Assembly: GCF_001194135.2 (NCBI RefSeq)
Contig: NC_069002.1
Coordinates: 16,363,351 to 16,427,120, forward strand
Origin: Octopus bimaculoides
Taxonomy: Eukaryota
Direction of reading: 5' to 3'
DNA length: 63,770 nt
This document shows positions 10,394 through 51,300 of the stretch, piece by piece. The position numbers and the translations under genes are program-made. The notes under the pieces are model-generated. The model saw only the letters and a list, made by a program, of their open reading frames with translations. It had not been told where the DNA came from and made no database searches. Each line of letters begins with the position of its first letter. The stretch's first letter is position 1.

Positions 10394-10812
10394 NNNNNNN
10401 NNNNNNNNNNNNNNNNNNNNNNNNNNNNNNNNNNNNNNNNNNNNNNNNNNNNNNNNNNNNNNNNNNNNNNNNNNNNNNNNNNNNNNNNNNNNNNNNNNNN
10501 NNNNNNNNNNNNNNNNNNNNNNNNNNNNNNNNNNNNNNNNNNNNNNNNNNNNNNNNNNNNNNNNNNNNNNNNNNNNNNNNNNNNNNNNNNNNNNNNNNNN
10601 NNNNNNNNNNNNNNNNNNNNNNNNNNNNNNNNNNNNNNNNNNNNNGTGTGTGTGTAGCTGCAAGTATGACTGTGGTAAGCTGGCTTCCCAACCACATGGT
10701 TCTGGGCTCAGTCCCACTGCATAGCACCTTGGGCAAGTCTTTTCTACTATAGCCTTGGGTCGACTAAAGCCTTGTGAGTGGATTCAGTAAATGAAAACTG
10801 AAAGGAAACTGT

Positions 10813-14154: not shown

Positions 14155-14420
14155 TTATGAGACACCCATTAAGGTGGGTAAGAATATTTGCCAGAACCTT
14201 GCCAGCAGCTGATAGTAGAGCAATACCCCTTTTCCTTTATAGAAAGGAAGAATAATTGCATCCTTCCAGTCCTTAAGCATTGCACCATCCCTCCAGACTG
14301 CAGTAATAAGTTCATGAAGGGACTGTATGATGTAATCACCACCAAATCGCAAAACCTCAGCATAAATTCCATCCCTTACAGGTGCCCTACCAAGATTCAA
14401 TTTACTTATTGATGTCATTA
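14155..14420 (-). mobile_element. RTE-type LINE RT fragment
   Basis: RAPVRDGIYAEVLRFGGDYIIQSLHELITAVWRDGAMLKDWKDAIILPFYKGKG. Confidence 0.8.
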
Positions 14421-15014
14421 CCTCATCTATTGATGTTGGTGCATTTACGTCCCCGTAACTTAGCAGTTCGGTAAAAGAGACCAATAGATTGAGTACTAGA
14501 CTTACAAAGAATCAGTCCTGGGGTCGATTTGTTCGACTAAAGGTAGTGCTCCAGCATGGCTGCAGTCAGTTGACTGAAACAAATAAAAGAATAAAAGAAT
14601 GAAAATATATATTAAAAATTAAGATACATATACTGAAAATAAAATAAATATATATGGGGGTGGGAAGCAGCACATATTAAGCAGAGGCCAGCAATGTCTG
14701 TGCAGAGTTTTAGATCCAATAAGGCTTGCACAACACCTCATAGACCCTCTCCACTTTATTGACATTATCCAGAGACAAACCAGAGCGAGATGTTTGGTGC
14801 CAATATGAATCGCAGGTTCAGGGATGTGGGAGCGCCATGATTTTTGGCACAAACCAAAGATCCCCAAAATGTCCAATAGCATTCCCTGCATATCTGGTTT
14901 TATATCAGAGTAACCTTCTCCTAGAGACATGTTTCAACAGAAGCTGAAGGGGTACGTCACTCCCAGTGGTCTTCTAGCATGCTGGACACCATCACAGTCT
15001 CATACATACATACA

Positions 15015-17749: not shown

Positions 17750-17765
17750 ATGTCTTACACACTCA
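17750..17765 (+). CDS. WDR1: WDR1 exon 1 coding part (MSYTL + first base of K)
   Basis: ATG TCT TAC ACA CTC A|GTAAGT. The phase-1 donor matches exon 2, which starts AA. The 16-nt coding length equals vertebrate exon 1 (MPYEIK; recalled). CpG-rich context. Confidence 0.88.
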
Positions 17766-20700: not shown

Positions 20701-23700
20701 ATTTATCGACGTTTATTATGTCGTCTGCACGACGAGTTCAAATCCCAGATCCCGGTGCCCCTTCATCCTGCAGATGAGACGGTAAACATCTAGAAATGTT
20801 AATGATAGAATTAAAAACTTTATAACTTAACCAATCAAACTGCTAGAAACGTCTACAGTATAAAATATTTTTTTCTACTCTAGGTACAAGGCCCGAAATT
20901 TTATGGGGAGGGGGCCAGTCGATTAGATCGACCCCAGTATGCAACATAATTTGCTGAGATAGGTTTTTCTACAGCCAGATGCCATTCCTGTTGTCAACTT
21001 CCATTTGTTTTCAAGTCAGGTAATGTCTCCTTATGGTCAGACATATTTTTGCAGTATATTAGAAACAAAGGACTCTGCTTGTATGGCAGTGACACTCATT
21101 TACAACTATTATATGATGTCAAGGCAGCGAAACAGTAACACACATACTCACACACACTTACTTGTGTGTGTGTGTGTGTGTGTGTGTGCAGGTGTGGCTG
21201 TGGTAAGAAGCTTGCTTCCCATCCACATGCTTCTGGGTTCAGTCCCACTGCGTGGCACCTTGGGTAAGTGTCTTGTATAATAGCCTCAGGCTGACCAAAG
21301 CCTTGTGACAGAAACTGAAAGAAGCCTGTCATATATACATATGTATGTGTGTGTGTGTGTGTGTATGAAGTACTAAGGTCAATTCATTCAACTGAAAATT
21401 CAAGGCAGTGCCCCAGCATAGCCACTGTCAAATGACTGAAACAAGTAAAAGATAAAAAAAAGAAGATAAAAGATATATAATGGCACAGGAGTGGCTGTGT
21501 GGTAAGTAGCTTGCTTACCAACCACATGGTTCTGGGTTCAGTCACACTGCGTGACACCTTGGGCAAGTGTCTTCTACTATAGCCTAGGGCCGACCAAAGC
21601 CTTGTGAGTGGATTTGGTAGACGGAAACTGAAAGAAGCCTGTTTCTAAGACCTTTGGAAATGTGCTGTGCGTGAGAAGACCCGGCAAGCCAAGTGAGATC
21701 GTTGCCAGTGCCCCTGGACTGGCTCTTGTGCGGGTGGCACATAAGATGTACCATCCTGAGCGTGACCATTGCCAGTACCGCCTGACTGGCCTTGTAGGGT
21801 TTTCGAGCGAGATCGTTGCCAGTGNNNNNNNNNNNNNNNNNNNNNNNNNNNNNNNNNNNNNNNNNNNNNNNNNNNNNNNNNNNNNNNNNNNNNNNNNNNN
21901 NNNNNNNNNNNNNNNNNNNNNNNNNNNNNNNNNNNNNNNNNNNNNNNNNNNNNNNNNNNNNNNNNNNNNNNNNNNNNNNNNNNNNNNNNNNNNNNNNNNN
22001 NNNNNNNNNNNNNNNNNNNNNNNNNNNNNNNNNNNNNNNNNNNNNNNNNNNNNNNNNNNNNNNNNNNNNNNNNNNNNNNNNNNNNNNNNNNNNNNNNNNN
22101 NNNNNNNNNNGACGTTAAACGAAGATGATGATGATGATATATATATGTATGTATGTGTGTGTATATGTTCGTGTGTCTGTGTTTGTCCCCTCAACATCGC
22201 TTGACAACCGATGGTGGTGTGTTTACGTCCCCGTAACTTAGCGGTTCGGCAAAAGAGACCGATAGAATAAGTACTAGGCATCCAAAGAATAAGTCCTGGG
22301 GTCGATTTGCTCAACTAAAGGTGGTGCTCCAGCATGGCCACAGTCAAATGACACCAGTAAAAGAGTAAAGAGTAATGGACTTCTTTCAGGTTATGTCTCC
22401 CAAATCCATTCAAGGCTTTCATTAGCCTAGAACTATAGTTGGAGACACTTCTGCAAGGTGCCATGCAGTATGCAGTTGGACTGAACTCAGAACCATGTGG
22501 TTGGGAAGCAAACATCTTACCTCACAGCCACACCTGCACCTATGTATATACACACATATATATAACATGTTTTTGTGTTATTTCCAATGAGATTGCAAGA
22601 GTGAAACTAATGAAATAACACTTGTGACAGTTGTCACTCCTTTTGTTCCATTTTCAAACAACTCTGGAATATCTGTGTCTTTGGTTTTGTCCGCCATTCT
22701 CTTCCTTCTCTATATCAGTGATCTTGCCATCTCATCCACCAAGGCCCACTTTTATGTAGATGATACAATCATTCATTCATCCCTCACCTTCTCCAGCTAC
22801 ACATTATTCATGTTCAACATAGACACCTTATGCCAAACCTGCACTGGTTTCAGCAATGGAGACTTCAAAACCAACCACTTGTGAGGCTGCAACCATCTTT
22901 CCTCTTTAATGGGAAAAATCCCTCAAGTATTATTCATATCAAAATTTCATCACACCTTCTCTCTAAAACGTGGGCAGCCCTTAACTAAAATCCTCAGAGT
23001 TGCTCTAAATGCGAGCTTTTACTATCGTTGAGGATCTCTCCTGGCAGAAACATGTCCTTAACAAAGCTAGGACTGCATCCCTAAAGCTGGCCCATCTTTA
23101 CAGGGCCAGAAAATATTTGGCTCTCAACAATTGCTGATACTCTACAAAACTGAAAGGAGGCAAGGTCCACAGTGGGGTATTACTCTATCTCTGAGACGGT
23201 GATACTGTTACACATCCAGACATTCTGGATTGTATCCAGAAAAGGGCCACTTGATTGATTGGCATAAAATCACTCACAGCACATACTCCAGCCTCAGGCT
23301 GACTTTTTTTGTCCCCCTGTCTTTTCTGTCATTTCTTTAATGGCCTTTGTTTTTCAGAATTATTTGCTCTTATATCTCCTCCACTCAAAAGTCTCGGTCA
23401 TTGCTTCCGTGAGGCCCAACACTCAAAAGGAACTCAGCCACTTTGCCTCTGTGAGGGTCAACATTCGAAAGGAAATCATTTTGCCTTCCCGAGGCCCAAC
23501 AATCAAAAGGAACTCAGCCACTTTGCCTCTGTGAGGCCCAACATTCAAAAGATGTTTTTTATGTCACCAGCATGGGTGCACTTGGCTTGATGGATGCTCT
23601 CAAGCACAGCACATCGCCAAAGGTCTTGGTCACCAGTCATTGCCTCTGTGAGACTCAAAGTTTGAAGATTATTCTTCACCACCTCGTCCCATGTCTTCCT

Positions 23701-26700
23701 GGCTCTACCTCTACCATAGATACCTGCCACAGTTAGAGATCGGCACTTCCTTACACAGCTGTCCTCATCCATACACATCATATGACCATACCAGTACAGT
23801 CGTCTATCTTGCACACCACATCTGATTCCTCTTATGCCTAACTTTTCTCTCAAGATGCTTACACTCTGTTGAACATGCACACTGACATTGCACATCCAGC
23901 GAAGTATGCTGGCTTCATTTCTTTCAAGCCTATGCATGTCCTTGGCTGTCGTAGCCCATGCTTTACTGCCATGCAGCATAGCTGTTCACACACAGGCATC
24001 AAGCAATCTGCTTTTCACTCTGAAAGAGATGCCCTTTGTTGTCAGCAGTGGTAGGAGCTCTCTGAACTTTGTCCATCCTAATCTTATTCTCACAGCTACG
24101 CTCTTGGAGCATCCACCTCCACTACTAATTTGGTCACCTTGATAACAGAAGGTATCTACTACCTCTAGCTTGCCTCCCTGACACTCGATGGAGTCTATTT
24201 TCAGCATTTATTGGACCTGTGCATCTTCCACACACAAAAGCTAGTTTCCCTGTTAACCTTCACTGATAATCAGTTTACAGATATTGAGGAAACTTTTCAG
24301 CATTATTTTATTTTAACCCCAAAATATGCTTTGTGGTGATTTTTGTTGCGGAAAATAAAATAAGCATTTTGGGTTGTCCAATTTCAGATTCACTGCAACT
24401 TGCTACTTGCTACCATATTAGAATATTACAAATCTTTCTATTGAACAGCAATTGGTGAGAGCAGTGGTGGTAAAGCAGAAGCTTTCCCATGGCTTTGAAG
24501 TATCTCTTACATTGGCGTAATTAAGTGGTGTAGATAGAAAATGATATTGAAACATTTAACCTCCTCCTCCTCCTTCTCCTCTTATTCATTTAGTAGTGTA
24601 CTTTGTACTGCTTCCAGCATGATAACGAGTTACAATGAACCAGAATTCAGAGTATAGTAAGATGGCCGGTAATTATTTTTTCCTACAACAAAAACTATCC
24701 AGAAATATTCGCCTGTCGTATGATTTAGTTTGAAAATGGTTTTGTGTTTATTTTTCATTAAAATTTTGATATCAACTGAGGTGAAAATAAACCATTGCTA
24801 TACAAAAATAGCTTATTGTACATCAATATAGACTGTTGAGTAATATAAATTGTAAAGGAACCACACCCCCTCAGAGGATGAGGTCACCTATGGACTTCTC
24901 TTTAGTATTACACCTCTGTTACACTGGATTTATTTCATTGAACATTGACTTCTTCTTAGTCATGAAAGTTAATACTTGTTTTTAAACTTGACGACTATTG
25001 TGTATGTGTATATGTGTGGGTGTGCGTGTGTGCATAGATTAATCCACTCATAGCATAATAAACGCTTCATTTGATCAGACTGATTTAATCTATTATTAAA
25101 CTTATCATCCATCTCTGGACTTATTAATCACTGCTTATGGTCAGGCAGATGTTTTCATCTTGGTTAATATAGTCACAATGTTTCGGCCATTTTCAGGTTT
25201 TTCTCATATTCAGTTAATGTTCCAAGAATTTGGAACCAAACTGTTCATTAAATGTCCAAAGATATTCTCCTTATTGGTTAGTCTACAACTTGTGATGCCT
25301 ATACTTTGTTATACATTAAAAAGTGGATGTAGGCATAAGTGTAGTACTTTGGGGAGTGGTAATAAGTTCAATCCGCAAAGCAGTCAAGATACACACACAC
25401 ACATGCACATATGTAAAAGACCCTCTTTGGTCATGAGACTGACCATGGGATTGCACTGAGAAAGTTACCCTCTGAGGCATAAGTCCAGGTAAGGTTGTTT
25501 ATAGAAGACCAGCAGTTACCCATACTCCCCTCTTCATGCCACTGACATTATCCAAGGGAAAGGCAAAGGCTGATACAGCTTGGCACCAGTGACATCGCAT
25601 CTCATTTCTACAGCTGAGTGAACTGGAGCAACGTGAAATAAAGTGTCTTGCTAAAGAACACAACACAGCCTTGTCTGGGAATCAAACTCACTATCTCATG
25701 ATTGTGAGCCCAACACTCTAACCATTGAGCCATACGCCTTCGCATATATATATATATATCATCCAACTGTCTGGATGTTTTGTTGTCACTTGTCGCATTC
25801 TTGTCCAATTTAAAAATTCTTTTTTATATACATATAGTGGCATATATACACTTTGGTCTCTTATATGTAAGTACACACACACACACACACACATAAATTT
25901 TGTATAACTCTCTTATTCTTTCACTCTCTCTTTCTTTCAGCCCCTTCACACTTATTTCGTTCTTTCCACCCTTCTTTCTTTCACTCCCCCTCTCTCACAT
26001 TTCCTGGCCTTCCCTTCATTCTCACCTTCCCTCCTCTTTCACTTCACTCTGTCTCTTTTTTTTTTTCTCGTCCCTCCCTAATTCTTCTATCCCTCTACCT
26101 CTCTCCTCTCCTTCCACATGACCGGTGTTCGACCAAGCCTGACCTTTCTTTCTTGGTTGTACTACCATTCATGCAACATCTATATTCCTTCCCATGCCTG
26201 TCATCTCTTATGTCCCTGCTGTAAGGCTTCACTTCCACACACGCCAGCTTAATTTTATTCGTCCTTAGTCGAAAGACACCTGTTGTTAATGTCTTGTTGT
26301 TTACATTTGTATTTGTGTACCATTTCTCCATTTTTGTCCGCCCTTGTTTTCATATACATTTGCTGCTTCTTTCCAAGGAATCTAGTGCTCTTAGCTTAGA
26401 TTTTCCTTGGGGCTAGCCAGATTGGAGCGGTCTCGAGTATAACCAGCCGAAACTGCAAAGATAATCTGGAACTCAACTGACGAATGAAAACTCCAAATGA
26501 CCCGTCCTTTTTTCATGTCCTTTTTTGTATCATCTAACTGTCTGGATGTTTTGTTGTCGCCTGTCACGTTCTTGCCCCATTTTTTGTATTCTTTATATAT
26601 ATATATGTGTGTGTGTATATGTATGTATGTATGTATGTACGCACGTGTGCTCCTCCTGTTAATAATCGTCACTTGTTTCCAAGTAAGGTAATATTTCCTT

Positions 26701-29138
26701 GTGACTAGACTTGTTTTTCATGGCAGATTGGAAATAAAGGACTCTGTTTGCATTATGGTGACACTTGTATATGACTATCATGTGATATCAAGGCAAAGAG
26801 ACAGTAACATACATACACACATACATGATGGTCTTCTTTCTGTCTTCCAAATCCACTTAGAAAGCTTTGATCAGCCTGGGGATATATTAGAAGACACTTG
26901 TTCATGCAGTGTCGATGTAGTGTTCACACTTGTCCAATGGGACTGAACCTAAAACCATGTGGTTGGGAAGCCAAAATTCTTGCTACACAGCCATGCCTGC
27001 ACCAGCAAGTCGTACCTACACCTATCATCATTGTTTAATGTCCTCTTTCCATGGTGGCATGGGTTGGACACTTTGACACAGAGCTGGCTAGCAGGGAGCT
27101 GTCTAAACTCTAATTGTCTGTTGTGGCATGGTTTCTACAGCTGGATGCCCCTCCTAACACCAACCACTAAAACAGAGTGTGCTGGGTGCTGTGCTTTTTA
27201 TGTGCCACTGGCACACGTGCATGAATGCAGCACTGGCATGGGTGCCTTTTTCTAAGTGGCACCAGCACCTGAAAGACAAGTCTGTATGTGTAAAAAACAG
27301 TAGGTGTGGCTGTGTGGTCTGTAGTTGGCTTCCCAACCACATGGTTCTGGGTTCAGTTCCGCTGCATGGCACCTTGAGCAAGTGTCTTCTGCAATAGCCT
27401 TGGGTGGGCAAAGCTTTGGAAGTGAAATTGCTTAATAGAAACTGTGTGGAATTAGCGAGCTGGCAGAAACGTTAGCACGCCGGGTGAATGCTTAGTATTT
27501 CGTCTGCCACTACGTTCTGAGTTCAAATTCTGCCGAGGTCAACTTTGCCTTTCATCCTTTCAGGGTTGATTAAATAAGTACTAGTTACGCACTGGGGTCG
27601 ATATAATCGACTTAATCCATTTGTCTGTCCTTGTTTGTCCCCTCTGTGTGTAGCCCCTTGTGGGCAGTAAGGAAATAAGGAAACTGTGTGGAAGCCCTTT
27701 ATTTGTGTGTGTTGAATATTTACACTTAGTGACTTTGCACAATGCTCTTTGTACTAAACGGTGATATCTGGTTTGCATACTTTGTAAACAGTGTTTTGTG
27801 GTTCTGCACTTTGATGACGAGTGGAATAAAAAAAATATTCCTTGAAAAATTGGTCAGTTTGGTGATATGAAAGGTATCCACCTCAATAAGTCTAACCCAT
27901 GCCAGCATAGAACAACATATGTAAAACAAATGAATTAATGAATATATGCAATGTATTGAAGGGAATTTAGCTGCTATTTCTAGCAGGTAGAGTCACCCAC
28001 ATAAAGGCACACTTGTTGGTTCATCACAAAATGTATGAGAGAGGTCTTTTGAGTCAAATGTAGGTTAGCTTGATTTCTTCTATTTACTCCAACCTCATAT
28101 CTATGGAACAGCGAAAGTGCAGAGAAGTTACTCATGCTTGAAACATTGCCAAAATGTACAAGACCCACTGAACTAACACGCCCACACACATTTAGACAAT
28201 TTTGTTTGTCTTGCCTGTATGTATACATTTGTAGACACACACACACACTATTTTACTCACACACACACTATTTTACCCTCCACACACTATTTTACACACA
28301 CATACACACACACACACACACACAGACATGTGTAAAATAGCATTAACAAGCTCGTTATTTAATTTACATTATACATGTAATTGAGTTTTTACAAATAAAG
28401 CAGGCATCATTATTTTATTTCTATAAAGAAAGAAAGGAGAATGTATTTAATTTGGGTTTAGTTTCACAAAATATTTTTCTTTTTTTTCTATGGCCATTTG
28501 TAAATGAGAAAAAAAACTAATTGTGAGATGAAAAAGCCAGCAAGTCACAACTATGTTTGTTATTGTTTGTCTATATTTGTATAACAGCGCTCCTTTAGTT
28601 GTATTGTAAGAACCGAAGGAGTGTTACTAGAGGATAGCTGAATATCAACCAATAAAAGATGAGCCAATTAGATAAAACCACATACTTCTCATTCCTGGAA
28701 GCCAGATTGTCCTAACTTTATCTTATTTGTTGTTGTCATCTTCAGTTAACACTCTAAACCCAGTTGTTTGAGATTTGTTCTGGATGCCTGAATTGGAGAG
28801 GCTGAAAGAAAGGACTAAAACAGCGCATTTGAGTCTGTTTGACACATGCTCACAGACTAATAGGCGTGTGTGTGTATGTTGAAATGGATGAAGCTGTGGT
28901 CAAGTGGTTATAAAGTTTATTTCAAAATCACGAAGTACCTGGTTCATTCCCACTGTGTGTACTATTATTCTAATATCTTTTACCATGGGGCTCTTACTGA
29001 AATGCTGCTTCTGTTAATTCCATCATGACTGTGTGGTAAGAAGCTTGCTTCCCAGCCACATGGTTTCAGGTTCAGTCCCACTGCGTGACACCTTGGGCAA
29101 GTGGCTGGATTTGGTAGACGGAAACTGAAAAAAGCCTG

Positions 29139-29186
<48 letters not shown>

Positions 29187-31108
29187 ATATATATATATAT
29201 ATGCCACTACATATATATACACACACACACACATACACTGTTGTGGTGGACACCCCCAAGTGAGAAGTGGGCTGTTCCACTACTGATAAATAGTGGACAA
29301 GCACAACAAGCAGTGTCAGTCGGCGAGGTATGATGTTCAGGCCAGTCACGCAGACAATGAAATACATCATCATAATGCAGGGCATTACATATCATATACG
29401 CATGTATATATTTTTATGGGTGTGTCTTTGTGTCTGTGTTTGTCCCCACCACCCATCCCTTGACAACTGATGTTAGTGTGTTTACATCCCCGTAACTTAG
29501 CAGTTCAGCAAAAAAGACCAATAAAACGAGTACTAGGCTTACAAAGAATAAGTCCCGGGGTCAATTTCTTTTACTAAAACCTTTTAAGACAGTACTCTAG
29601 CATGGCCACAGTCGATTGACTGAAACATATAAAGGAAAAGAATAAAAGAAAAGAATCTGTTTAGGCAGAATTTCCATTATCATCATCAGCAGCAACAGCA
29701 ACAAGCTAATGAGGGTTAGGGTTAGGGTTAGGGTTAGTTGACCTGCTAGAAATAGTTGTTTATCTCCCTCAGATAACACCTGACCACTTAGATAATAAAA
29801 ATTTTATCTTGTTACTTCAATCATAATTCAATTCAATCAGGGCTGACCTAGGCCTTAATAGCTACAACAACCTCCACAGCAAAGTGATTTTGTGAGCAAC
29901 AATACAAGTGAGAAGCTTTTACAATGTTCTTGCTGTTCTTGTTGCTGAGTAACCAAGGACAGCTTTAATCTGGCAGATCTATGATATGTGAGTGGCTGAC
30001 CAAATGAATAGGTGTGGCCCACACATCTCCTCTTCTCTCTTCCTCTCCCTTGTCTCTTTTTTCTCATCCACACAAACTGCTCACAAGAGGAGCCTCTGAC
30101 ATCAACTATTGTGAAGTATTTTAGAAGAGGTTTAATACTTAACACACACACACACACACACACACTCTGGTGTCAATGAGAAGGTGAAATTAGATCCCTG
30201 CCTGCTACAGTTGCAACTCTACACAAATACATTAGCTGCATGTTTGGATTGAAGCAGCTTGCTGCTGAGACTTCTGATGAGCAAATATGTAATTTTTAGC
30301 TTCTTACCTCAAATAATGTCAGGTTTCCTGTACGATGCACATGGTTGAGATGTATGGAATCTCTTGATTTTTTTCTCACTATGAACTGCTATGTGGACTC
30401 CCTATTTGCTAGAAATAGCAGCCAAATTCCCCTCAAATTACATTTACCAGCTAAAACAAAAAACAAAAAAAGATTGGACAATGTAGTTCCTGATATATAA
30501 AGATGGGATGGTCACATTCAAAATATTTGCTTGATCTCCTGGAACAATGACAACAATATTATTACTACACCACACAGTATTACACTACACACAGGATAAT
30601 GTTCTATTTGGTGTACTGTAGCTGAATAAAAACTGGGATGGTCATGGCTGGAATGTCTTTGATTATTGGTCTGCATGATGATGATGATGTGTTTGTGTGA
30701 GATGTGCAGATATATGTGAAAATGTAAAACAACATGAAATGTGTAAAAGTTAACGTTTAGCTGTGATATTGTGATATTAAATCTCCTTTGCCCCTGGATA
30801 GATTGTCAGTTTATTTGAGGTGACTTTCCCAGAGATCTACAACCTGTTTCTGATAGCTGGTGTATAGAATAATTGTACTGCCCAAATAATCCTGGATTAT
30901 TTGTTGGTAAGCAAACACCACATCCATTTGGCTCTAATTCTACTGTGTGTGTAGGGGATGGATCTACAAAAGTACATTTTTTTGGTAAAATAGAAGGTAA
31001 AAGGAAGGCAGCCAAAGAGAAGAGCAAGATAGGTGGAAAATATTAGTGAATAACATTCAAGATTCAACAGAACTGCTATTGGAATGGTTTGAAATTGTAT
31101 ATATTGTT

Positions 31109-31162
<54 letters not shown>

Positions 31163-32588
31163 ATCTGAAGTGCAGTTGGTTTCTGATTGCATTGAAAATT
31201 AGGTTCAGTGCTATACAATAGTTTATCCACTCAAAACAAATTCGCACACAGAAACATCTTGGACTCATGGAACATTTGCATGGAATTTACTGAGTTTAGG
31301 AAGCAGTCTTACTCAGTCACCAAAGTGACTTCCACCATATACAGTATCTCACAGAAATATGTACAAGGCGGCAAGTTGGCAGAAACGTTAGCACGCCGGG
31401 CGAAATGCTTAGCGGTATTTCGTCTGCCGTTACGTTCTGAGTTCAAATTCCGCCGAGGTCGACTTTGCCTTTCATCCTTTCGGAGTCGATAAATTAAGTG
31501 TCAGTTGCGCACTGGGGTCGATGTAATCGACTTAATCCCTTTGTCAGTCCTTGTTTGTCCCCCTCAGTGTTTAGCCCCTTGTGGGCAATAAAGAAATAAG
31601 AAATATGTACCCTTCTAAAAAATTTCAGTGAAATTGTCATTACTCTGACAACATCAAAGGAAATGAAACGGAAGTAATACTGAATGAAATATATTATGCA
31701 CACAAAGTTATACTGAATGAAATATATTATGCACACAAATATTATACAAATTTGGAACACCAAACAATAAACATGATTATTCCCAAACTCCTTTCCCTTA
31801 CATAGGTTTTGGCAAAAGAAAGAGGACTTGATTTATGCCTGGTAGTGAGGAGAGGCTTCCTACGAGGAACGCATCCATGAAGACAACACTGGTTCAAACT
31901 TCAGCAAACTGTTTGGGTGGATACACTCTTTCCACTAACAGAAGACACACCTTGGGCCAAAGATGAAGCGGTATGATGCCTGTCATCCATCATGCAACGT
32001 TGGATATGGCGAATATCACACGCAGTTAAAATAGAAAGACAACCTGGAAGATGTTTATTGCTTAGCCGTCCAGTAGCTTTGTACTTCTGAATTACTTTGA
32101 CAACCGTGTTAACTTGTATACTAAACCAGGTATGAACGAAATATTAATTTTCAAAGTTACAAAAATATGTACACCATGAAGGAAATTTGCTATATTCAAT
32201 ATTTTATCCACTTTTTTTTACTAAATTCAGATGTTGCTGATAATTTCAATTCTAATAAATTATTTCTCCTGGCATTTTTGCATTGGTCATTGCTATTGCA
32301 TCTGCAGGAATTCTGATTTGTGTACCGTGGTGAAAATCTTCTTCATTGTGATTAAAGTGGCACCAAAAGGAAAAGAAGTGTCTGAAGATTTGAAGAAAAT
32401 TATTTTTAATTTGTACAAGGAATTATAAGCGCAGGTGTCTGTGTATGGTAAGAAGCGTGCTTCCTTACCACATGGTTCTGGGTTCAGTCCCACTGTGTGG
32501 CACCTTGGACAAGTGTTTTCTAATATAGCCTTGGGCTATATTAGTAAATTTGGAAGACAGGAACTGAAAAAAGCCCATTGTGTGTGTG

Positions 32589-32629
<41 letters not shown>

Positions 32630-35600
32630 ATGTATGTATGTATGTATTTATGTGTGTGTTTCTTTGTGTCTGTGTTTGTTTCCCTATTGTCACTTGACCA
32701 CCGATGTTGGTGTGCTCATGTCCCTGTAACTTGACCGATAGAATAAATACCAAGCTTACAAAGTCCTGGGGTTAATTGCTTCAGCTAAAAGGTGGTGCTC
32801 CAGTATGGCCACAGTCAAATGACTGAAACAAATAAAACAATAAAAGAAAAGAATGGTTTAGTATACAAGTTAACACGGTTGTCAAAGTAATTCAGAAGTA
32901 CAAAGCTACTGGACGGCTAAGCAATAAACATCTTCCAGGTTGTCTTTCTATTTTAACTGCGTGTGATATTCGCCATATCCGACGTTGCATGATGGATGAC
33001 AGGCATCATACCGCTTCATCTTTGGCCCAAGGTGTGTCTTCTGTTAGTGGAAAGAGTGTATCCACCCAAACAGTTTGCTGAAGTTTGAACCAGTGTTGTC
33101 TTCATGGATGCGTTCCTCGTAGGAAGCCTCTCCTCACTACCAGGCATAAATCAAGTCCTCTTTCTTTTGCCAAAACCTATGTAAGGGGAAGGAGTTTTGG
33201 AATAAAATTCTTTTTTCTGATGAGACTAAAATTAATTTGTTTGGGTTAGATGGTATTAAACAAGTATGGTGATGATCAGGTAAAGATAATAGCGACAAAT
33301 GCACTATGCCTTCCATGAAACATGGCGGCAGAAGTGTTATGCTTTGAGTGCGGCTGGTGTGTGAGGATTCACATTTATTGAGAGAACACTGGATTCAAGG
33401 CTTTATTGTGACATATTGCAGAAAACAATATTGAAAAGCATCAAGGAACTAGGAAGACATTCCATGTTCCAACATGATAATGACCTTAAAAACTCTTCAA
33501 AGATGGCGACTAAGTTTTTATCAGATTAAAAGATAAAGATATTACCTTGGTCTACCATGTCATCTGATTTAAACCCAGTAAAACATTTGTGAGGTGTTTT
33601 TGAAAAGGAAGGTTGAGGAGAAAAAAACCCCACAATGCAACACGCTTGAAAGACATCATTCAGGATGAATGGAGGTCGATTCCATCACTTATATTCAGAA
33701 ATTTAGTCGACTCTATGCCCAGAAGACTTAATACAGTCATTGAAAGCAAAAGTGGTCACACCAAATATTGAATATAGCAAATAATTCTTTAGGGTGTACA
33801 TATTTTTGTATGGTTTGAAGATTAATATTTCATTCATATCTTTAAAAATGTTTATTGTTTTGTGTTCCAAATTTGTATAATATTTGCATGTATGATATAT
33901 TTTATTCAGTATAAATTTTGTTTGATTTACTTTGATATCATCAGAGTAATGGCAATTTTACTGAAATTTTTTAGGGGTGTATATACTTCTGTGGGATACT
34001 GTATATTTTCATGTGTGTGGTTTAGTGGTTAGGGTATTCAGCTCACGATCATAAGGTTGTGAGTTTGAAAACTGGTGGCACATTGTGTCTTTGAGCAAGT
34101 CACTTTAGTCTGTGTTGTTCCCATTCATTCAGCTGGCAAAAAATTAATAGTATCTGTAATTCAAAGGGCCAGCCTTGTCAAATTCTGTGTCACACTGAAT
34201 CTCCCTGAGAACTATGTTAAGGGTTTGCATGTCTGTAGAGTGCTCAGCCAACTTGCTTATTAATTTCATGAGCAGGTTGTTCTGTTGATCAGATCAACTG
34301 GAACCCTTGTCGTCGTAACAGACAGTGTTATTTTCATGTGGATGTAGTCTGATGATGATGATGATTTTTGATTTCAAGTTGGCCTTCAACCATTCCCCAT
34401 CTCTTAAAACAAGACTTAATCACATTTTATTGGAAGTTGGTCTGAGTTGACTGTCTAAAAAATCTCGGTGAATTGTGTCTTTGAGATTTATTGACATTTA
34501 AACTAAATCTCCTCTTCAAACCTGATTAGTGTTCTTGAGTCATTTGCTGTAAGAGCTTAATTATATAAATCTTCTGCCACTAATGAAAGAACTCAACTTT
34601 TTTTTCCTATCAAAGCAGCCACTTTATATAAATCTGTAGAAAAGCCAATAAATAGAACCAGTGCCAGACATCTTGCTTTTTTTTTGTTGCTATAGTTACT
34701 GTAACACTCAACAATGAAGCATTATTTTATTCTACCAGGCTCTTCATTCATAAACTTCCAGGGTTTTATTGTTTTTGTTTTGTTTTTTTTATCTCATTAA
34801 ATGGTCGAAGTTTTTTTTTTTCCTGATGTTAGAGAAACAATCCATGTTTTGTTTTATTGACATACAACACTTGTAGAATGTTTTATTCCTTTCTGTTTTG
34901 TATTGCATGTTGTTGCTGCTGCTGCTGCTGCTGCTGTTGTTGTTGTTGTTGTTGTTGTTGGTGGTGGTGGTAGTGGTAGTGGAGGTGGTGGTGATAGTGC
35001 TTCCTTGTTGAGGACGTCACCAAGGTTTCTGAAACTGGGTGTGGGTGACATTTGCTAGAGAGTTAGATTAGCATGGAGAAAGGACTTGCAAGTTCAATTC
35101 CCATCATAAGCTAGTCTTTAAAAGCCCGTGTTTTCATAGTTGAGATAACAAGATGCAGGGAGATGTTAACCTCACAGTCTATTGTGGTCCTCTTTCAGTA
35201 TGTGAGGGCTAATGGTGACCTAGTTATTTCATAGTACTTCAAGTTAAAATGCCAGTACCATGAAGGCCATAAAAATTTTTGGATATGTTTATCATATTTC
35301 TCTGAATTTTTTATTTTATTCTTACCGATTCCTCCTTCTGAAAGTGTTGGTCTGTTTTTGCTTTAGTCTTAAGAACCGTCCAGCTAAGTAAAATTGAGGC
35401 CAAGAAAGCACATCCTTTATAACCATGCCCCTGCATACAATCTGTCCGCAGATAAATCTCCCCCACATCCCCTCTTCCCAACACTTACCTCTTTATCCCA
35501 CTTGCCAACCCACCTGCACACAATATGTCCTCGTCAAATCTCTTCCCAAGCCCCCATCTCTCAAGCTCTCCCTTCCTCTACCTACTCACTCCATTCCCTC

Positions 35601-38600: not shown

Positions 38601-41600
38601 ATGCTTAATTCTTGGCATGGATAAATAAAAAATTTTGCTTACACAAGGTAAAAAAAATACCAATTTACTTACAGCTGTGAGATTTACAAGAAAGCACGGC
38701 CATCCTCTATAGCTTGTGAGCAAACACTGAGTCAGAATCACATTTAGAAATGTCCAGTGAATTGGTATCTGTGACTCAACTTAATTATAATCTATAGTTC
38801 TTTTGTAATTTATGCTGAAAAATTATCCAATTTATTGGACAAAGTGACTGAAGGAATTAAGGTACCTAAGGGCCAGCTAGTGGTGTTCAGCTGGGTGATA
38901 GAGTAACCCTTTATCATTTAAACTGGCCATATCTGGCCCAAAATTTTCTACTTGTTTTATGTTCAAACTAACCAGGTCTGGCCTCTCACACTTATCTAAA
39001 TGGCATTCAATCACAATCATTGTGATTGTCATTCAATAAACAATCACATCATTGAAATCTCAAAGCTATAAAGACAATGCATGCTTAATTGAAAACAATG
39101 TGAATGAATATAAATTACATTTGGTAGAGAAATATGAACACTAAAGGGTTAAGTATAGAATTCAAGTATTGGGCTTCCACATAGTTTCCATTTTCTCAAT
39201 TTCTCTCACAAAGCTTGGGTTGACCTTAGACTATGGCCAAGCACATGCTTAAGGTATTGCACAATTGAATAAAACACAGAGCTATGTGATTCCAAAGTGA
39301 ACTTCTTTTTAGTATTGAGATTGAGACCTTTCTACAGTCAACAAAAGTGGAGGCGCAATGGCCCAGTGGTTAGGGCAGCGGACATGTGGTCATAGGATCG
39401 CGGTTTCGATTCCCAGACCAGGCGTTGTGAGTGTTTGTTGAGCAAAAACACCTAAAGCTCCACGAGGCTCCAGCAGGGGATGGTGGCGAACCCTGCTGTA
39501 CTCTTCCACCACAACTTTCTCTCACTCTTACTTCCTGTTTCTGTTGTGCCTGTAATTCAAAGGGTCAGCCTTGTCACACTGTGTCACGCTGAATATCCCC
39601 CGAGAACTACGTTGAGGGTACACGTGTCTGTGGAGTGCTCAGCCACATTAATTTCACGAGCAGGCTGTTCTGTTGATCGGATCAACTGGAACCCTCGATG
39701 TCGTAAGCGACGGAGCGCCAACAACAGTCAACAATCTGCTCCAAAGTGGCACCCTACTTAATCCTCGAATGTTTACAGATCTCTTTTTCTGCCAACTTTT
39801 CTTATTTCTTTACTGCCCACAAGGGGCTGCACACAGAGGGGACAAACAAGGACAGACAAACAGATTAAGTCAATTATATCGACCCCCAGTGTGTAACTGG
39901 TACTTATTTGGTTGGCCCAAGGCAACAATAGAAGACACTTCCTCTGAACCCCAGAGCCATGTAGTTGGGAAACAAGTTTCTTACCACATAGCCACACCTG
40001 TGCCTATCTCTAGTTTGCTATAAACAGATTTATGTTACAGTCGCAAAAAAATCAAACATTTAAAAGAGAATCCCGCTTTGTAATACTAATTAATATGGTT
40101 GGCATTGCCGTTATATCATTATTGCTGTTTGTTATTTTTTAGCCCCAGAGCGTTGAAGAGCTAAACTTGATATTATTCCAAAACTAACTAACATCTAGGT
40201 TAGCAACTTGTTGATTTGATAATTTCTGTGTGTGTGCCATTAACACACTTACAAAGCTGAAACTGGAATGGTCTAAGTTAATCAAAGCTTAGCTTCTAGT
40301 TGACTTCGAACAGTGAACATATCTTTGGAAGTGAAGTCTTCACAACTATTGAGTATTATGAGAACATAGACTTCTGGTTTCTTTGAGGAAATATTCACTT
40401 CCAAAAGTGAAGTACAATTAGTAAAAACCAGCTAGTTTGTATTTTTAAAGTTGAGAATAGCAGCACCTTACATATCACAACAACAAAAATTTAGGTTCAT
40501 GGATTCCTTTTTTTTTTTTTTATTTAAAATTTAAAATTGATAAAATTAAGACGTTCTCTGGAAGTGGATAATTAAACTTCTGTGATTGAAATTTAATTAA
40601 AATAAAAAATGAAATTTCGTTTTTGTATTTGGTTTGCAAGATTCTTGGTATGGACTTTCATGTCAGCACAACTTTTATTTTTGATATTTGTTCATAATTT
40701 TTTCTGCATGGAAAATTTCGTATACACACTTGTGTTTCCATTCTCTCTCACACTCATGTTCCAACTCTCTTTCATACTCAAGTAAGTCTCTCCCATATCT
40801 TGTTCTTTGCTGTAATGCAAAATAGAATGTAATGGTCATCACAGTTGAAATGTTGTCGAGATGAAGCAACTGCCCATTGGCTACCAAACCAACAAAATGG
40901 AATTCTAAATATTAATTAGCATTCACAGAATTTATTGATTCAAATAAAGAAATAGCTAAAGTATGTAGCCTAGTGGTTAGGATTGTTGGTTCAATTCCCA
41001 GGCTCAGTATTTTTGAGCAAAATAATTCATTTTATGTTGCTTCATTTCTCTTAACTGAAAAGGAGTCACAGCAAAAGTTGGGGTTTGATCCTGAGGCCGA
41101 TTAGCATTCCATTCTGAAGAGGGGCTAGTTTCAACCACTTGGTTACTTTAGAAACGGGAAATAGACCTGGGCCTAATGAACCTGTGAACTGAAGAAACAC
41201 TTACACTGACTTAAATGTTTGTGTATGTGTGTGTGTTCCTTAAGTGGCTGACTCAAACATGTTGGATAAAGTTGGCATGACTCTTGAAGCCACAAAATAA
41301 TCAAACAAGCAATTACTTGTGACACTTCCAAGTAAGAATTGAAACACTTCAAGACATAGAACTACTCTAAGATTAATACAATCTTGGAAATGGAGATACT
41401 GAATGTTAGTCAATTACATATAATGTACCAAGGGGCCAACTATGTCTGGGGTTAAATTCCCACTCAATTTGGTTTCGTGACATTTTCTCTGTTCTTAGAA
41501 TGTTTTTTTGTTTTTATTTTTTTAACCCTTTAGCATTCAAACCGGCCATATCCGGCCAAAATATTCTACCTGTTTTATCTTCAAAACAGCCAGATCTGGT

Positions 41601-43289
41601 CTCTCACACCTATCCTACAACGTCATTTTAAAAATAAACAGTCACATCATCAAAATCTCGAAACTATGTGATAGTGCATGATGAATTCAAAATAATGTAA
41701 ATCAATAAACATTACATTTGTTAGATTAATCTGAATGCTAAAGGGTTAAATATATTTTTCATTCAGTTGTACAAAAACAGTACTGCTGCATGACCTTGAG
41801 TGTAACAGATAAAAATGGCTAAAAATTAATCCTTAACAAAATTTACTTCTATAAATGTCATTATTTTTCAGAAACCACATTTCCAACTCTTCCTCGAACC
41901 CAGCGTGGCATGCCTATAGTTTTAGGTGCTGACCCCAAAGGAAAATATTTTCTCTACACCAATGGACACAATGTTGTCATCCGAGACATCGAAGTAAGTC
42001 TGTTTTAAATACAATATTTCATATTATGTTTCATCTAAATGTCCCATTTCCTTCTCATCTATATTCATTGTTGTTGGCACTCCGTCACTTACGACGTCGA
42101 GGGTTCCAGTTGATCCGATCAACGGAACAGCCTGCTCATGAAATTAACGTGCAAGTGGCTGAGCACTCCACCGACACGTGTACCCTTAACTTAGTTCTCG
42201 GGGATATTCAGCGTGACACAGTGTGACAAGGATGACCCTTTGAATTACAGGCACAACAGAAACAGGAAGTAAGAGTGAGAGAAAAGTGTGGTGGAAGAGT
42301 ACAGCAGGGTTCGCCACCATCCCCTGCCGGAGCCTCGTGGAGCTTTAGGTGTTTTCGTTCAATAAACACTCACAACGCCCGGTCTGGGAATTGAAACCGC
42401 GATCCTATGACAGCGAGTCCACTGCCCTAACCTCTGGGCCATTGCGCCTCCACCATCTATACTCACAGTATAGAATACCAACAACTATGAAGTTCACTTT
42501 TAAAACCCATTTCATTTATGACATCATTGTTTTAGAGCTCCAGTGACTTTGATGTCACTGCCATTACTAAACCCTGATACCAGTAATTGTATCCTTCGTT
42601 GTAGGACTCCATCACAGCCTAAAACCTGGTTTACTGTGTCCCACCCCCCAATACTATTAGACCTCTAGTTGTGATATCCCTAGTTGTAGGGTCCTGAATG
42701 ACAACTATACCCTCTAATTGCAGAGCCCTTACAACAACGTTCCTGGTTACAGGCCCCAACTAGAGTGGACATTCCTAGCTATAGCCCCTAACTCCTACCC
42801 ATTCCATGCTGTCTAATGTCTGTGTTATGTCATCATTCTAACTGCTAATGATTTGTCTGTTGTCGTAGAACCCCAACAAATGTGATATGTACACAGAACA
42901 TTCCGGTAATGTGATTGTTGCCAAATATTCTCCGAGTGGTTTCTACATTGCCTCTGGAGGTAAGATACCTTTCTCTTTTTCTTATCATTTTACGCTATTA
43001 ATGAGTCACCAAGGAACTGAATTCTTATCAGTCATGTTTCTATTGAGAACAACTGTCATTCTGAAGTGTTTAAATAAATTATAGGATTCAATTACATACA
43101 TATATATATATGTATATAGGTGCAGCAGTGGGTGTGTGGTAAGAAGCTTGCTTCCCAACCACATGGTTCGGAGTTCAGTTCCACTGCATAGCACTTTGGG
43201 TAAGTGTCTTCTACTACAGCCTTGGGCCAACCAAAGCCTCGTGAGGGGATTTGGTAAATGGAAACTGAAAGAAGCCCATCGTGTATGTA

Positions 43290-44302: not shown

Positions 44303-44823
44303 CCTTTCTGCTCTAGGCACAAGGCTTGAAATTTGTGGGGAGGGGGTAAGTTAATTACGTAATAATAATAATAATAATGATGATGAAGATGATTTAGGTA
44401 CAAGGCCAGTAGTTTTGAAGGGGAGAATGTAGTCAATACCTTTTGAATACAGTTGTTATTTATTTTATTGACCCCGAAACAATGAAAGACAAAGTTAACT
44501 TCTGCTGGATTTGAACTCAAGAATGTTAAAAAGTGGGAAGAAATACTGCAAGGCATTTTGTCTGTCTCATCATCATCATCATCATCGTTTAACGTCTGCT
44601 TTCCATGCTAGCATGGGTTGGACGATTTGACTGAGGACTGGTGAACCAGATGGCTGCACCAGGCTCCAATCTGATCTGGCAGAGTTTCTACAGCTGGATG
44701 CCCTTCCTAACGCCAACAACTCTGAGAGTGTAGTGGGTGCTTTTACGTGCCACCGGCACAAAGGCCAGTCAGGCGGATACTGGCAACGGCCACGCTTCCT
44801 AATGATTTTGCTAGTTTGCTGTC

Positions 44824-45709: not shown

Positions 45710-47040
45710 CTCTTTCTTTCTCACCCCTTGTTTTTTTTTATTTTGTTATTTAGCCATAGGCCAGCAAACTATATCAAGCACATTTGCAATCTATCGTATT
45801 CCAGCTTTAATCACTTTATCTTTTCAGGTGTATTATTAAAGAGAGGAGAGTGTCATTCATATGAAATTGGCTGCTATTACTAGCCGGTTACGCCTCCATG
45901 TACTGGCTTCTTTTTGTTGGTGTGTAGCCCCAATCAACTCACACTAACATATACAAAAAGTGATATAACTGCAAGAGCTTCTTTTGTCTTTTGGATGATG
46001 AATATTTTAAATGATAACAATGTAAACATCTAAAATTTGTAAAATTATTTAAACCATACTATCATATAAGTATAAAAAAATTAAAAAGCCACAGCAATGT
46101 TAATTACTCCAAACTGGAATTTTGTTGATGTTAAATTATAATTTGATATTTTTACCAGGTTCGCTCGTGCTTTTCTGGTGGATACAGGTTCCTCTGTTGG
46201 AGAAATTAGTGGCCACAGCAAACCAATCAATTCCTGTGACTACAGACAAATTAACCCCTTCAGGGTGGTGACGGCCAGTGAGGACTACTCTATTATCATG
46301 TGTGAAGGCCCACCATTTAAGTTCTCCAAAAAGATTGATGTGAGTATTTAGTTTTTGTTTAATGGATTATTGTTGTAGTGTAGTCTCTGGTTGGCTCTGA
46401 TCAAGGCGAATTATGTAGTAACCCACAGGTTACCCAGTCAGAGCGTACCTGCAGGTGCCATGAGTACTTCCCACCTCTCATATATCTGTATGTGTGTGCA
46501 TATATATATATATGTGTGTGTGTGTGTGGAGGTGCAATGGCCCAGTGGTTAGGGCAGCAGACTTGCGGTCATAGGATCGCGGTTTCGATTCCCAGACTGG
46601 GCGTTGTGAGTGTTTATTGAGCGAAAACACCTAAAGCTCCACGAGGCTCCGGCAGGGGATGGTGGCAAACCCCGCTGTACTCTTCCACCNNNNNNNNNNN
46701 NNNNNNNNNNNNNNNNNNNNNNNNNNNNNNNNNNNNNNNNNNNNNNNNNNNNNNNNNNNNNNNNNNNNNNNNNNNNNNNNNNNNNNNNNNNNNNNNNNNN
46801 NNNNNNNNNNNNNNNNNNNNNNNNNNNNNNNNNNNNNNNNNNNNNNNNNNNNNNNNNNNNNNNNNNNNNNNNNNNNNNNNNNNNNNNNNNNNNNNNNNNN
46901 NNNNNNNNNNNNNNNNNNNNNNNNNNNNNNNNNNNNNNNNNNNNNNNNNNNNNNNNNNNNNNNNNNNNNNNNNNNNNNNNNNNNNNNNNNNNNNNNNNNN
47001 NNNNNNNNNNNNNNNNNNNNNNNNNNNNNNNNNNNNNNNN

Positions 47041-48319: not shown

Positions 48320-51300
48320 AAGACAGCATGTAAGCTGAAACTTCAAAGCCACTTTCAACTTTTCTATTACTATGGTAATGTGAGGATGTCCCATCTTCCT
48401 TGAAATAAAACTCTACATCTTCAAAGTTTACTTGAATAATAGGTGTGTCACCTGTGTGAAAAGACTGCTGTTGGCTTGTGCAGGCTCTCTTTACCATATA
48501 TACACACACAAGAGTTAATATATAGATGATTTTAGTGTTAGGAAGAGCATCCTGCCATAGAAACCATGCCAGAACATACAGTGGAATCTGACACAGCCAA
48601 TGGCTTTGCCAGCTTCTGTCAGACCATCCAACCCATGTCCGCATGGAAAACATGTTAAATGATGAAGATGCTTTATCCAAGTGTTGTTTATTCAACTCTA
48701 TTTTTGCTGTTAATTATTGAAAAATTAATCCTTGTTGTTTTATTACATTTTTTTTTCCTAGGCCTTTGTTTATGATGGAAAAAATGGTGAAACAATTGGT
48801 GAACTTGGTTCTCCTGCTCACAAAGGTGGTATTTATGGGGTAAGAAGATAATCATTTTTCCCTGTTTGTTTTTTTTCTTTGTAAATCTTCTGCAAGTTGT
48901 ACAGTTTTATAAAGTTCTTATATTTTATTTACGTCATTTCCTGAACAAAATTTTATTATCTTTTATTTTTACCATATTATAAAGCGGAACCATGGTTTAT
49001 GTGCGGGCGACACATGAAATCTTTCAAGCGGGATCGTTGCCGGTGCCCCTGGACTGGCTCATGTGCGGGCAACACATGAAATCTTTCGAGTGGGATCATT
49101 GCCGGTGCCCCTGGATTGGCTCATGTGCGGGCGACACATGAAATCTTCCGAGTAGGATCGTTGCCGGTGCCCCTGGGCTGGCTCTTGTGCGGGTGACACA
49201 TGAAATTTCTTCGAGTGAGATCGTTGCCGGTGCCCCTGAACTGGCTCTTGTGCGGGTGACACATGAGGTTTCTCGAGCGAGATGAGCGTGGCCGTTGCCA
49301 GTACCGCCTGACTGGCCTTCGTGCAGGTGACACATAAAAGCACCCACTACACTCTCTGAGTGGTTGGCGTTAGGAAGGGCATCCAGCTGTAGAAACTCTG
49401 CCAAATCAGATTGGAGCCTGGTGTAACCATCTGGTTTCACCAGTCCTCAGTCAAATCGTCCAACCCATGCTAGCATGGAAAGCGGACGTTAAACGACGAT
49501 GACGACGACATTCTTTCAAGTCCAACAGAATGCCACTCATTTACAGAGGAAGTAACCTCACCATCACCCACATCATGATAGGATGTGTGATGGAGCAAAA
49601 GGGTTGTTAACTAAAGCTTCTCATCTGCAGCATCTGCATCACATCTAAGGACAGAGATTCAGTCCATCAGGTCTCTTCTTTTCATTTCTGGATCATCTCA
49701 TTGGCTCTAGAATTAAGGAGATATTTACCCTGGTTAGGACTTAATAAATAATATCACCAATTGGGATATCAAAGGAATAACTATTTTGACAGCTGCATCC
49801 CCTTCTTACTGCAAACTGTTTAACTCTTTAGCATTCAAACCAGCCATATCTGGTTCTTATTTTTATGTTCAAACTGGCCAGATCTGGCCTCTCACACATA
49901 CCCTACAATGTCATTCTAGAAATAGGCAATCACATCATCATAATCTTGAAGCTTCAAGATAATGTATGATTAATTCAGAATGATGTGAATGAATAAGCTT
50001 GGCATTTGACAGAATAATCTGAATGCTAAAGGATTAACCATGAACTGGAACCCATTTCTGTCGGTTGGTTGGTTGGTTGTGTTGTGCTGGGGAACAAAGA
50101 CACATATTTTATTCAGGAGTGCAACATAATGGCTGTTGTACTTGAGGTTTGATTTGAACTCTTGATTTTGTAGTCCATTGTCCAACACCTTAAAATAACA
50201 GCTACTATGCTTCTCTCCCTCTCTTTTCAGAAGGTTATCAAACTAATGCAAACACGAAACTACATCTTATGTAGAACTAGGATGTCCTAGTACATCTTAT
50301 CTAGATCTAGGATGTCATTGTTAGATACTACAGATTATTAAGTTTCTGTTATTAACACCAGGTCTACTCTCCGATTTAGCAGATCTATAATCAAAGACTG
50401 GGTGGATTTGAGGGAGATCTGATTGCTATTTCTAAAACTCCTGGTAACCATATACACTCCTTTCTTGATCATTGATAATTTGTGATTTTTTTAGCTCCAG
50501 GTCAGACATCCCAACTGACAACTGTCTAATTTTTTTTTTTTCAGATAGTGTATCTATGACTACACAATCTAATGTAGAGTCTGTCTCTCTCTTTTTTTTT
50601 TTAAGTAATGTGTAATTTGAAGGAGATTTAGCTGTTATTTCAAGCAGATTAAGCAACCACATAGAGGCTGTAAATGCACCCCTGTTTGCTGTGACCTTGT
50701 ACAAAAAAAATGTTTGACTACTGTGAAATATTTTTCCATTTTTATGTGAAGGATTGTGGTTTGTTTTCAAGTTACACTGAGGCATCTTCTGCAGACAAGG
50801 ACATCAGCTATCAGTGGGACGTTTATTTTTAACTGAGACATCTGTTGTAGGTAGCATTTCTGCTGTAGGCTAAGACATCTACAACAGCTGAGATGTTTAC
50901 TACTGACTTGGGTAGATATTCCAGTCTGTGGCAGCTATCAAAATGCACAACACAAAACTTAAATCATAATATTTGTATTTATATCTGAGACAAGTGTCTC
51001 TGTCAACAAATATAACTATTTCTGTGTGAAATTGTTTTCTTTTTAATCTGATCAAATCTTGACATTGGAACTTGCATTTCCGATGCTGCTTTCATGTTTC
51101 TTTGATCACCTTAGATCAATTAGACATATTCTTCTATGTTGCCAACATGAATATTTCTATCCAATATCACTATCTGTTTTGGTATAATTTGTTATGGCTG
51201 AATGCCCTTCCTGATACCAAACACCCCATAGAGTGGGCTGAATGCTTTTTATGTGGCACCACCACAATCAAGGTCAGTTTTGGCATAGTTTTTACAGCTG

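Follow-up and report, generated by a model that had tools for sequence, protein, structure and literature searches.

The window analysed here is a stretch of 63,770 nucleotides of the Octopus bimaculoides genome (RefSeq assembly GCF_001194135.2, contig NC_069002.1, positions 16,363,351 to 16,427,120 of the forward strand), and its positions are numbered from its first letter. It carries the gene WDR1 and, in what is probably the first intron of that gene, a decayed Tc1-like transposon. The transposon is interrupted by two nested short interspersed nuclear elements (SINE-A and SINE-B) and contains, between its left end and its transposase gene, an inverted second copy of 352 bp of that same gene. 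The origin of this inverted copy and what it may imply for the transcripts of WDR1 are the subject of this report.

The transposon reads TA/CAGTATCTCAC...GTGGGATACTG/TA at its ends (31340-31342 and 34001-34003), that is, it has a TA target duplication and termini of the CAGT type. Its terminal inverted repeats, ~240 bp long (about 230-250 bp), each contain a direct repeat twice, in an outer and in an inner copy, and the core AAATATGTACACC is present at the inner as well as at the outer position, in the arrangement known as inverted repeat/direct repeat (IR/DR). The coding region, when read through its lesions, matches the Pfam DNA-binding domain HTH_Tnp_Tc3_2 (E=1e-14; 55 bits, the cut-off being 31.5). 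The homologues of this read-through are Tc1-like transposases of the Sleeping-Beauty type, with the domains HTH_SB and DDE_3 (best identity 51%), and two Octopus vulgaris proteins are 61-68% identical to it. Pfam did not detect DDE_3 in the read-through itself, nor is there an intact open reading frame (ORF) of the kind an autonomous element would have: the start codon, ATG in the O. vulgaris copies, is GTG at 32357, and at least six stops as well as frameshifts follow. Judging from its sequence, the element is a member of the Tc1/mariner superfamily, in the Tc1-like IR/DR group, and a dead one, because its start codon is lost and several stops and frameshifts have accumulated.

Base-by-base comparison and blastn both align 31777-32128 with 33205-32854, in inverted orientation and ungapped, over 352 nt with 349 matches (99.15%); the spacer between these arms is 725 nt long. 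An earlier, sequence-only reading of this DNA had described a near-perfect inverted duplication of 352 bp with about three mismatches and a loop of 725 nt, figures that turn out to be exact. An automated repeat search returned longer arms (31766-32128 and 32854-33216, 363 nt, 98%); compared base by base, identity is at chance level directly beyond the 352-nt block on both flanks. The arms differ at 31784 (C in place of A, the pairing partner of T33198), at 31794 (T, against G33188 in the right arm) and at 32001 (T, against G32981 in the right arm), which at the RNA level amounts to one C/U mismatch and two G-U wobbles. In the repeat search this was the longest and most perfect real inverted repeat of the 63.8-kb window, longer matches being runs of N, i.e. 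spurious perfect palindromes, which were set aside; for an inverted repeat of this length chance is no concern.

The right arm spans the end of the first helix-turn-helix, the HTH_Tnp_Tc3_2 domain and the linker, and ends ~5 codons before the first catalytic Asp (FSDETK). The Pfam match (composite residues 61-131, ~32972-33182) falls within it, in line with the earlier identification of the copied segment as the DNA-binding region of the transposase. Likewise, repeat search, blastn and the alignment of the family agree in placing the copy where it had been proposed to lie, namely between the outer and the inner direct repeats of the left terminal inverted repeat. The features of the locus are collected in Table 1.

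Table 1. Features of the Tc1-like element, its inverted copy and the flanking WDR1 exons (window coordinates)
Feature	Position	Strand	Remarks
WDR1 exon 1, putative coding end	17750..17765	+	ATG TCT TAC ACA CTC A, then GTAAGT donor at 17766; MSYTL plus one base
Tc1-like transposon (IR/DR, Sleeping-Beauty-like), to all appearances dead	31342..34001	+	CAGT...ACTG termini; TA duplication 31340-31341 / 34002-34003
Nested SINE-A	31366..31598	+	In the outer part of the left inverted repeat; 12-bp target duplication AGAAATATGTAC (31353-31364, 31599-31610)
33-bp tandem duplication	31672..31737	+	Two units with one difference, located within the left inverted repeat at 39 bp from junction 1
Junction 1	31775..31776	+	GA, matching neither the family inverted repeat nor the donor; filler or ambiguous
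Left arm	31777..32128	-	Inverted copy of 32854-33205, lying between the two direct repeats (outer, inner) of the left inverted repeat; 7-9 bp replaced
Spacer/loop	32129..32853	+	725 nt: GG junction bases 32129-32130; inner left inverted repeat with inner direct repeat 32158-32181; 5' leader; first 22 transposase codons 32357-32423; SINE-B 32424-32853
Nested SINE-B	32424..32853	+	tRNA-like head, internal microsatellite, purine-rich tail ending ...AATAAAAGAAAAGAA
Right arm	32854..33205	+	Original; sits in the transposase gene at its regular site and in its regular orientation
Right inverted repeat	33763..34001	-	Uninterrupted; inner direct repeat 33787-33810 and outer direct repeat
WDR1 exon 2	41872..41993	+	First exon recognisable by homology; acceptor tttttcag upstream

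The element was compared with two copies of the same family, L001 and L002, which lie on separate chromosomes of the O. vulgaris assembly GCA_951406725.2, were found via the transposase homologues and match the DNA of the window element at 84-93% identity. In both of them the left inverted repeat is unbroken and reads AAACATTTTCAAAGATATGAAC, where the window has AAACAT-GA-(352 bp)-GG-TATGAAC; the transposase segment is single-copy in each and the 352-bp insert is absent. The inverted copy is therefore no part of the design of the family. Nor were its junctions found in these other family copies (2/2, both from O. vulgaris), as would be expected of an amplified, rearranged MITE-like subfamily (MITE, miniature inverted-repeat transposable element) that has a long internal inverted repeat.

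The same comparison points to the donor. Both arms lack the same 27 bp that L001 and L002 have after GGTTTAGnATACAAGT, and they have in common ~12-15% of private substitutions relative to these copies; the donor was therefore the very same element, already decayed, rather than a generic member of the family, and the earlier description of the event as templated is upheld. The right arm runs on into the downstream transposase sequence exactly as in L002, and on this alignment it is the original, the left arm being the copy. Polarised against the family, two of the three differences are derived in the left arm (31784 and 31794) and one in the right arm, and this 2 + 1 split matches the expectation for two real loci diverging after a duplication.

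Two other accounts were tried and rejected. CpG decay in the left arm had been considered for the pair 32001/32981, where the family has A and the change (A to G, + strand) took place in the right arm. Had a sibling copy been inserted by transposition, it would have left transposon ends and a TA duplication; no transposon ends were seen on the 352-bp insert and no target duplication, of TA or otherwise, around it.

In the window, junction 1 reads AAACATGA/TTATTCCC and junction 2 reads CTAAACCA/GGTATGAAC. The insertion cost the left inverted repeat 7-9 bp and left 2 + 2 unexplained bases at the junctions. Microhomology, looked for at lengths of at least 2-5 nt, was not found: there is 0 nt at junction 1, plus GA, and at most 1 nt (T32854) at junction 2, plus GG. 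In the alignment, neither the right inverted repeat nor L002 of O. vulgaris has the 33-bp tandem duplication that lies close by; it is hence private as well, and the error-prone repair that produced the inverted copy may have generated it too.

The anatomy of the junctions also bears on whether the left arm exists in the animal at all. It might be a misplaced second copy, derived from a haplotype variant, a gap-filling error or a chimeric read, while the true left repeat is uninterrupted; the window does belong to a scaffold assembly and is interrupted by eight runs of N, and a difference of 0.85% between arms is within the range of heterozygosity. Such an artefact is nevertheless improbable. 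The nearest run of N is more than 9 kb away from the element; both junctions are novel joins that share no sequence with each other or with the donor, whereas graph-based misjoins need shared k-mers; the loss of 7-9 bp exactly at the insertion, together with a private tandem duplication nearby, is a typical scar of biological repair; and the distinct bases in the arms imply that the assembly had separate evidence for each of them. Exact protein look-ups of four ORFs of the window, one of which spans junction 1, made in search of independent contigs of the locus, found none on record.

With regard to age, the arms have diverged by 3/352, i.e. 0.85% (Poisson range roughly 0.2-2.5%) or ~0.43% per arm. 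The right inverted repeat may serve as reference for the state of the left one before the insertion: after removal of SINE-A, of one tandem unit and of the 352-bp insert, the two are ~88% identical (80-89% block by block) and thus differ by ~12%. The sequence-only reading was right in holding the terminal repeats to be far more diverged than the arms, and hence in calling the inversion recent relative to the element; its figure of ~80% identity between the terminal repeats is too low overall, the nested insertions being left out of the present value. The distances from consensus are ~3.6% for SINE-A and ~8-10% for SINE-B, values that are inflated by SINE subfamilies and rest on rough consensus sequences built from only 10-14 copies. 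Taken at face value, they would make SINE-B 10-20 times older than the duplication, and SINE-A older than it too; most likely, to judge from these distances, SINE-B predates the duplication by a wide margin.

Inverted repeats less than 1 kb apart convert efficiently, sex-chromosome palindromes being an example. The duplication could be old, its arms having been kept alike by gene conversion while SINE-B arrived later at the base of a potential hairpin or cruciform. This history would account for the coincidence of SINE junction and arm boundary, provided that structured DNA attracts insertion. It requires, however, continuous homogenisation during all the time in which SINE-B gained 8-10% of change, there is no independent sign of conversion, and the neighbouring 33-bp tandem duplication, with its single difference, is young as well; an old, converted duplication is thus regarded as unlikely.

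The coincidence just mentioned deserves closer attention. The right arm begins with T32854, the last base of the target duplication of SINE-B, and includes zero SINE-specific bases. The breakpoint does lie, as had been noticed from the letters, at the 3' junction of the nested SINE (32853/32854), with the exact end of SINE-B being uncertain by up to ~7 nt in that its target duplication of 4-7 bp (GAAT to AAGAAT) merges with the A/G-rich tail. The insertion of SINE-B itself, into the family site CAAGAAT^GGTTTAG, was clean, with that duplication and without any deletion; L001 and L002 have 41 bp at this region and no SINE-B, and three other copies of SINE-B in the window also end ...AAAAGAA. The probability that a SINE terminus should lie by coincidence no more than a few bases from any of the four ends of the arms is estimated at ~1-2%, and some causal link is likely.

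Repair at the insertion of the SINE, the link that the earlier reading put forward as possible, is not borne out. The breakpoint is indeed located where the integration nick is expected, but the ages do not agree (8-10% for SINE-B, on a consensus of 10-13 copies, vs 0.43% per arm) and the insertion is clean. Spelled out, this account makes the two a single event: the staggered break of target-primed reverse transcription (TPRT) that installed SINE-B would also have yielded the inverted copy, the end of which marks the second-strand cut at 32854/32855. According to the established geometry of TPRT, the last base of the target duplication, where the right arm starts, is precisely where that cut is expected. 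Nonetheless, a common event would have to accommodate a 10-20 fold difference in age and an integration with a regular target duplication and no deletion, and would call for the left inverted repeat, 1.1 kb away, to have broken at the same time; such an event is very unlikely to have occurred. A stall at the tail of SINE-B is favoured instead as the link, because SINE-B looks much older than the duplication.

Two further proposals involving SINE-B were rejected. A deletion of ~30 bp of transposase sequence upon its insertion is at odds with the clean insertion, and the missing 27 bp represent a separate deletion situated inside both arms. A retro-copy of a SINE-B read-through transcript should contain SINE sequence, of which the copy has none, and the model leaves unexplained a 5' end exactly at the boundary between SINE and flank.

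Taken together, the locus is best read as a private structural mutation of the repair type, which hit one long-dead Tc1-like copy and is young relative to the element; I give this reading a probability of about 0.7. As to the mechanism, I infer that the left inverted repeat suffered a break, or a stall of repair synthesis, at a point between its two transposase-binding repeats, the outer and the inner one. The lesion would have been healed by an insert of 352 bp in reverse orientation, copied from the element's own transposase gene ~1.1 kb away, either through two template switches in the course of repair synthesis or through the capture of a fragment by end joining. In so doing, the repair would have lost the 7-9 bp, left the 2 + 2 junction bases and used no microhomology, and leftward synthesis along the transposase gene may have stalled or dissociated at the purine-rich tail of the older SINE-B. 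The features that fit error-prone repair are a donor in cis at ~1.1 kb, the reverse orientation, the deletion at the acceptor site, the filler and the 33-bp tandem duplication nearby, the latter being consistent with error-prone synthesis with multiple switches. The junctions, as they read, fit end joining with filler better than models mediated by microhomology.

Several points weigh against this interpretation. An old duplication could appear young as a result of gene conversion between its arms, and the ages of the SINEs, against which the youth of the duplication is measured, depend on consensus sequences from only 10-14 copies. The stop of the arm at 1-7 nt from the end of the SINE calls for an explanation, at ~1-2% by chance, and a tail acting as barrier is only one option. 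The missing microhomology suits template switching less than plain end joining, and the two are not separable here. Finally, the structure rests on one gapped scaffold assembly, with its eight runs of N, none of them less than 9 kb from the element, and the family is represented in the comparison by two copies only, both from O. vulgaris.

A bolder generalisation could be drawn from the stop at the SINE-B tail, the private tandem duplication and the small deletion, the last two next to the other junction, namely that SINE tails are general barriers that set the points of template switching in repair synthesis. The idea is an improbable one. Were it true, the SINE-dense introns of octopus would be systematically seeded with long perfect hairpins, and this would be part of the explanation for the exceptional load of double-stranded RNA (dsRNA) and the hyper-editing of these animals.

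Known systems offer partial parallels. In the mosquito Aedes aegypti, the MITE Goblin contains, in inverted orientation, a subterminal piece of the Tc1/mariner element Ozma, which has been explained by a template switch in the course of gap repair and subsequent end joining (PMC3814204). As in Goblin and Ozma, a segment of the element itself is inverted beside a terminal repeat, and the junctions bear small scars; Goblin, however, is an amplified family with microhomology at its junction, whereas the octopus case is single, absent from 2/2 other copies and devoid of microhomology, and the octopus element, unlike the miniature Goblin, retains its full-length, dead form. A donor in cis at ~1 kb, a reverse copy, a small acceptor deletion, filler and a second small duplication are also found in templated inverted insertions and fold-back duplications ascribed to fork stalling and template switching (FoSTeS) or microhomology-mediated break-induced replication (MMBIR), and in the templated insertions of polymerase theta. 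Yet 352 bp is much longer than typical templated inserts of polymerase theta, and a microhomology of only 0-1 nt departs from what MMBIR and FoSTeS would lead one to expect.

The consequence at the RNA level depends on the position of the element with respect to WDR1. With a human WDR1 sequence as query, tblastn locates exons of the gene on the + strand from 41872 onwards. Only 1/16 candidates combining an ATG, phase 1 and a donor site resembles the N-termini of WDR1, that is, the putative exon at 17750; it would join the acceptor at 41871/41872 in phase, its N-terminus matches the homologues, and the spacing is the same as in the homologue P0116. Intron 1 would then be 17766-41871 and probably contains the element, on the sense strand; the sequence-only reading had put it in that intron, very probably correctly, with exon 1 being deduced from the genomic sequence only. 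A search with the WDR1 protein for the orthologous locus of O. vulgaris returned no cephalopod WDR1, the best identity being 69%.

The predicted fold of 31760-33220 (1461 nt) has all 352 positions in the stem, with one mismatch and two G-U pairs, and a minimum free energy of -866 kcal/mol; the 352-bp stem with a 725-nt loop, as anticipated from the letters, is thus what the folding model returns. If WDR1 is transcribed through intron 1 as inferred, its pre-mRNA would carry this stem and loop. The prediction is that of a long, near-perfect intramolecular duplex, i.e. of the kind of substrate on which the RNA-editing enzyme ADAR acts. Octopus tops the ranking of metazoans for hyper-editing, which occurs where inverted repeats give rise to long and almost perfect dsRNA (PMC5625713), and because of this tie the editing of the stem by ADAR is a fair prediction; by analogy, hyper-editing is plausible here as a reasonable and ordinary expectation. 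Like the inverted Alu pairs of primates and the inverted repeats of octopus (PMC5625713), the locus would have repeat-derived inverted copies in one pre-mRNA and a long predicted stem. The arms differ from those of such pairs in that they come from a duplication within one element, not from two insertions, hence their unusual length and perfection (99%).

A role in silencing is another matter. The sequence-only reading had proposed that the hairpin feeds endogenous small interfering RNAs (endo-siRNAs) or PIWI-interacting RNAs (piRNAs) that silence the Tc1 family in trans; one may add a regulation of WDR1 itself. The long perfect stem does lie in an intron that is probably transcribed, and hairpin-RNA (hpRNA) loci of like form, i.e. 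a long inverted repeat with a loop, are established in Drosophila as sources of endo-siRNAs. However, molluscs seem to lack the processing pathway or to have it at a level that escapes detection: a survey of molluscs that includes O. bimaculoides reported neither a dedicated siRNA pathway nor detectable endo-siRNAs, and editing was proposed as the fate of dsRNA (PMC12479628). Moreover, all family copies seen are dead, only 6-14 of the 332 21-mers of the arm are present in the two O. vulgaris copies, and the structure is private and young, i.e. it lacks the conservation that would argue for function and that one would look for in an hpRNA locus. Silencing of the family by small RNAs is hence unlikely, a functional hairpin-RNA locus of either kind exceedingly so, and the duplication has no evident function. 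Scans with Rfam and for tRNAs over 29-36 kb of the window returned no tRNA and only microsatellite look-alikes of miRNAs below threshold.

The structure is, then, familiar in kind, both as a rearrangement of a transposon and in what it entails for RNA. Its interest is that of a cleanly resolved case in which a long, near-perfect intronic hairpin probably originated de novo from a repair accident in one dead transposon, with junctions, donor and relative ages all readable from the sequence, and the locus may be regarded as a convenient natural substrate for the study of ADAR hyper-editing in octopus. The significance is modest. Structures predicted to have the same effect abound in octopus (PMC5625713).

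Some minor observations concern the surroundings. The look-alikes found in the Rfam scan are matches to mir-297, mir-466 and similar families at 29134-29240 and 32574-32642; they are below the gathering scores, lie on (TA)n/(TG)n microsatellites and are taken as false positives. The eight runs of N in the window are at 2276-3071, 7318-7327, 8431-9328, 10394-10645, 13106-13563, 21825-22110, 46690-47040 and 53050-53651, and the gaps of the assembly are found mostly at microsatellites and SINEs. ORFs that resemble pieces of a reverse transcriptase, and thus remnants of long interspersed nuclear elements, occur upstream of WDR1 intron 1 (14155-16738) and within it (23545-23979), and are candidate partners of the SINEs. 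SINE-A has many copies in the window (78-92% identity, blastn), and at 8330-8929 of the L001 region of O. vulgaris three head-to-tail copies, ~90% identical to SINE-A of the window, form a small tandem array. In the L002 region (O. vulgaris OX597837.1, 5001-48948), the gene model P0099, which has a fusion-like name, includes a first exon with HTH_SB from a copy of the Tc1 family, representing either an exonisation or an annotation artefact.

Other inverted repeats are present in the WDR1 unit. A pair of 254 nt and 94% identity (39347-39600 / 42200-42453), probably made of two SINEs, brackets WDR1 exon 2, an arrangement that favours back-splicing and circular RNAs and provides further ADAR substrates; two more pairs, both at 93%, are located at 42290-42453 / 46526-46689 (164 nt) and 44644-44776 / 49304-49436 (133 nt). 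By sequence, WDR1 holds several potential long dsRNAs besides the 352-bp stem.

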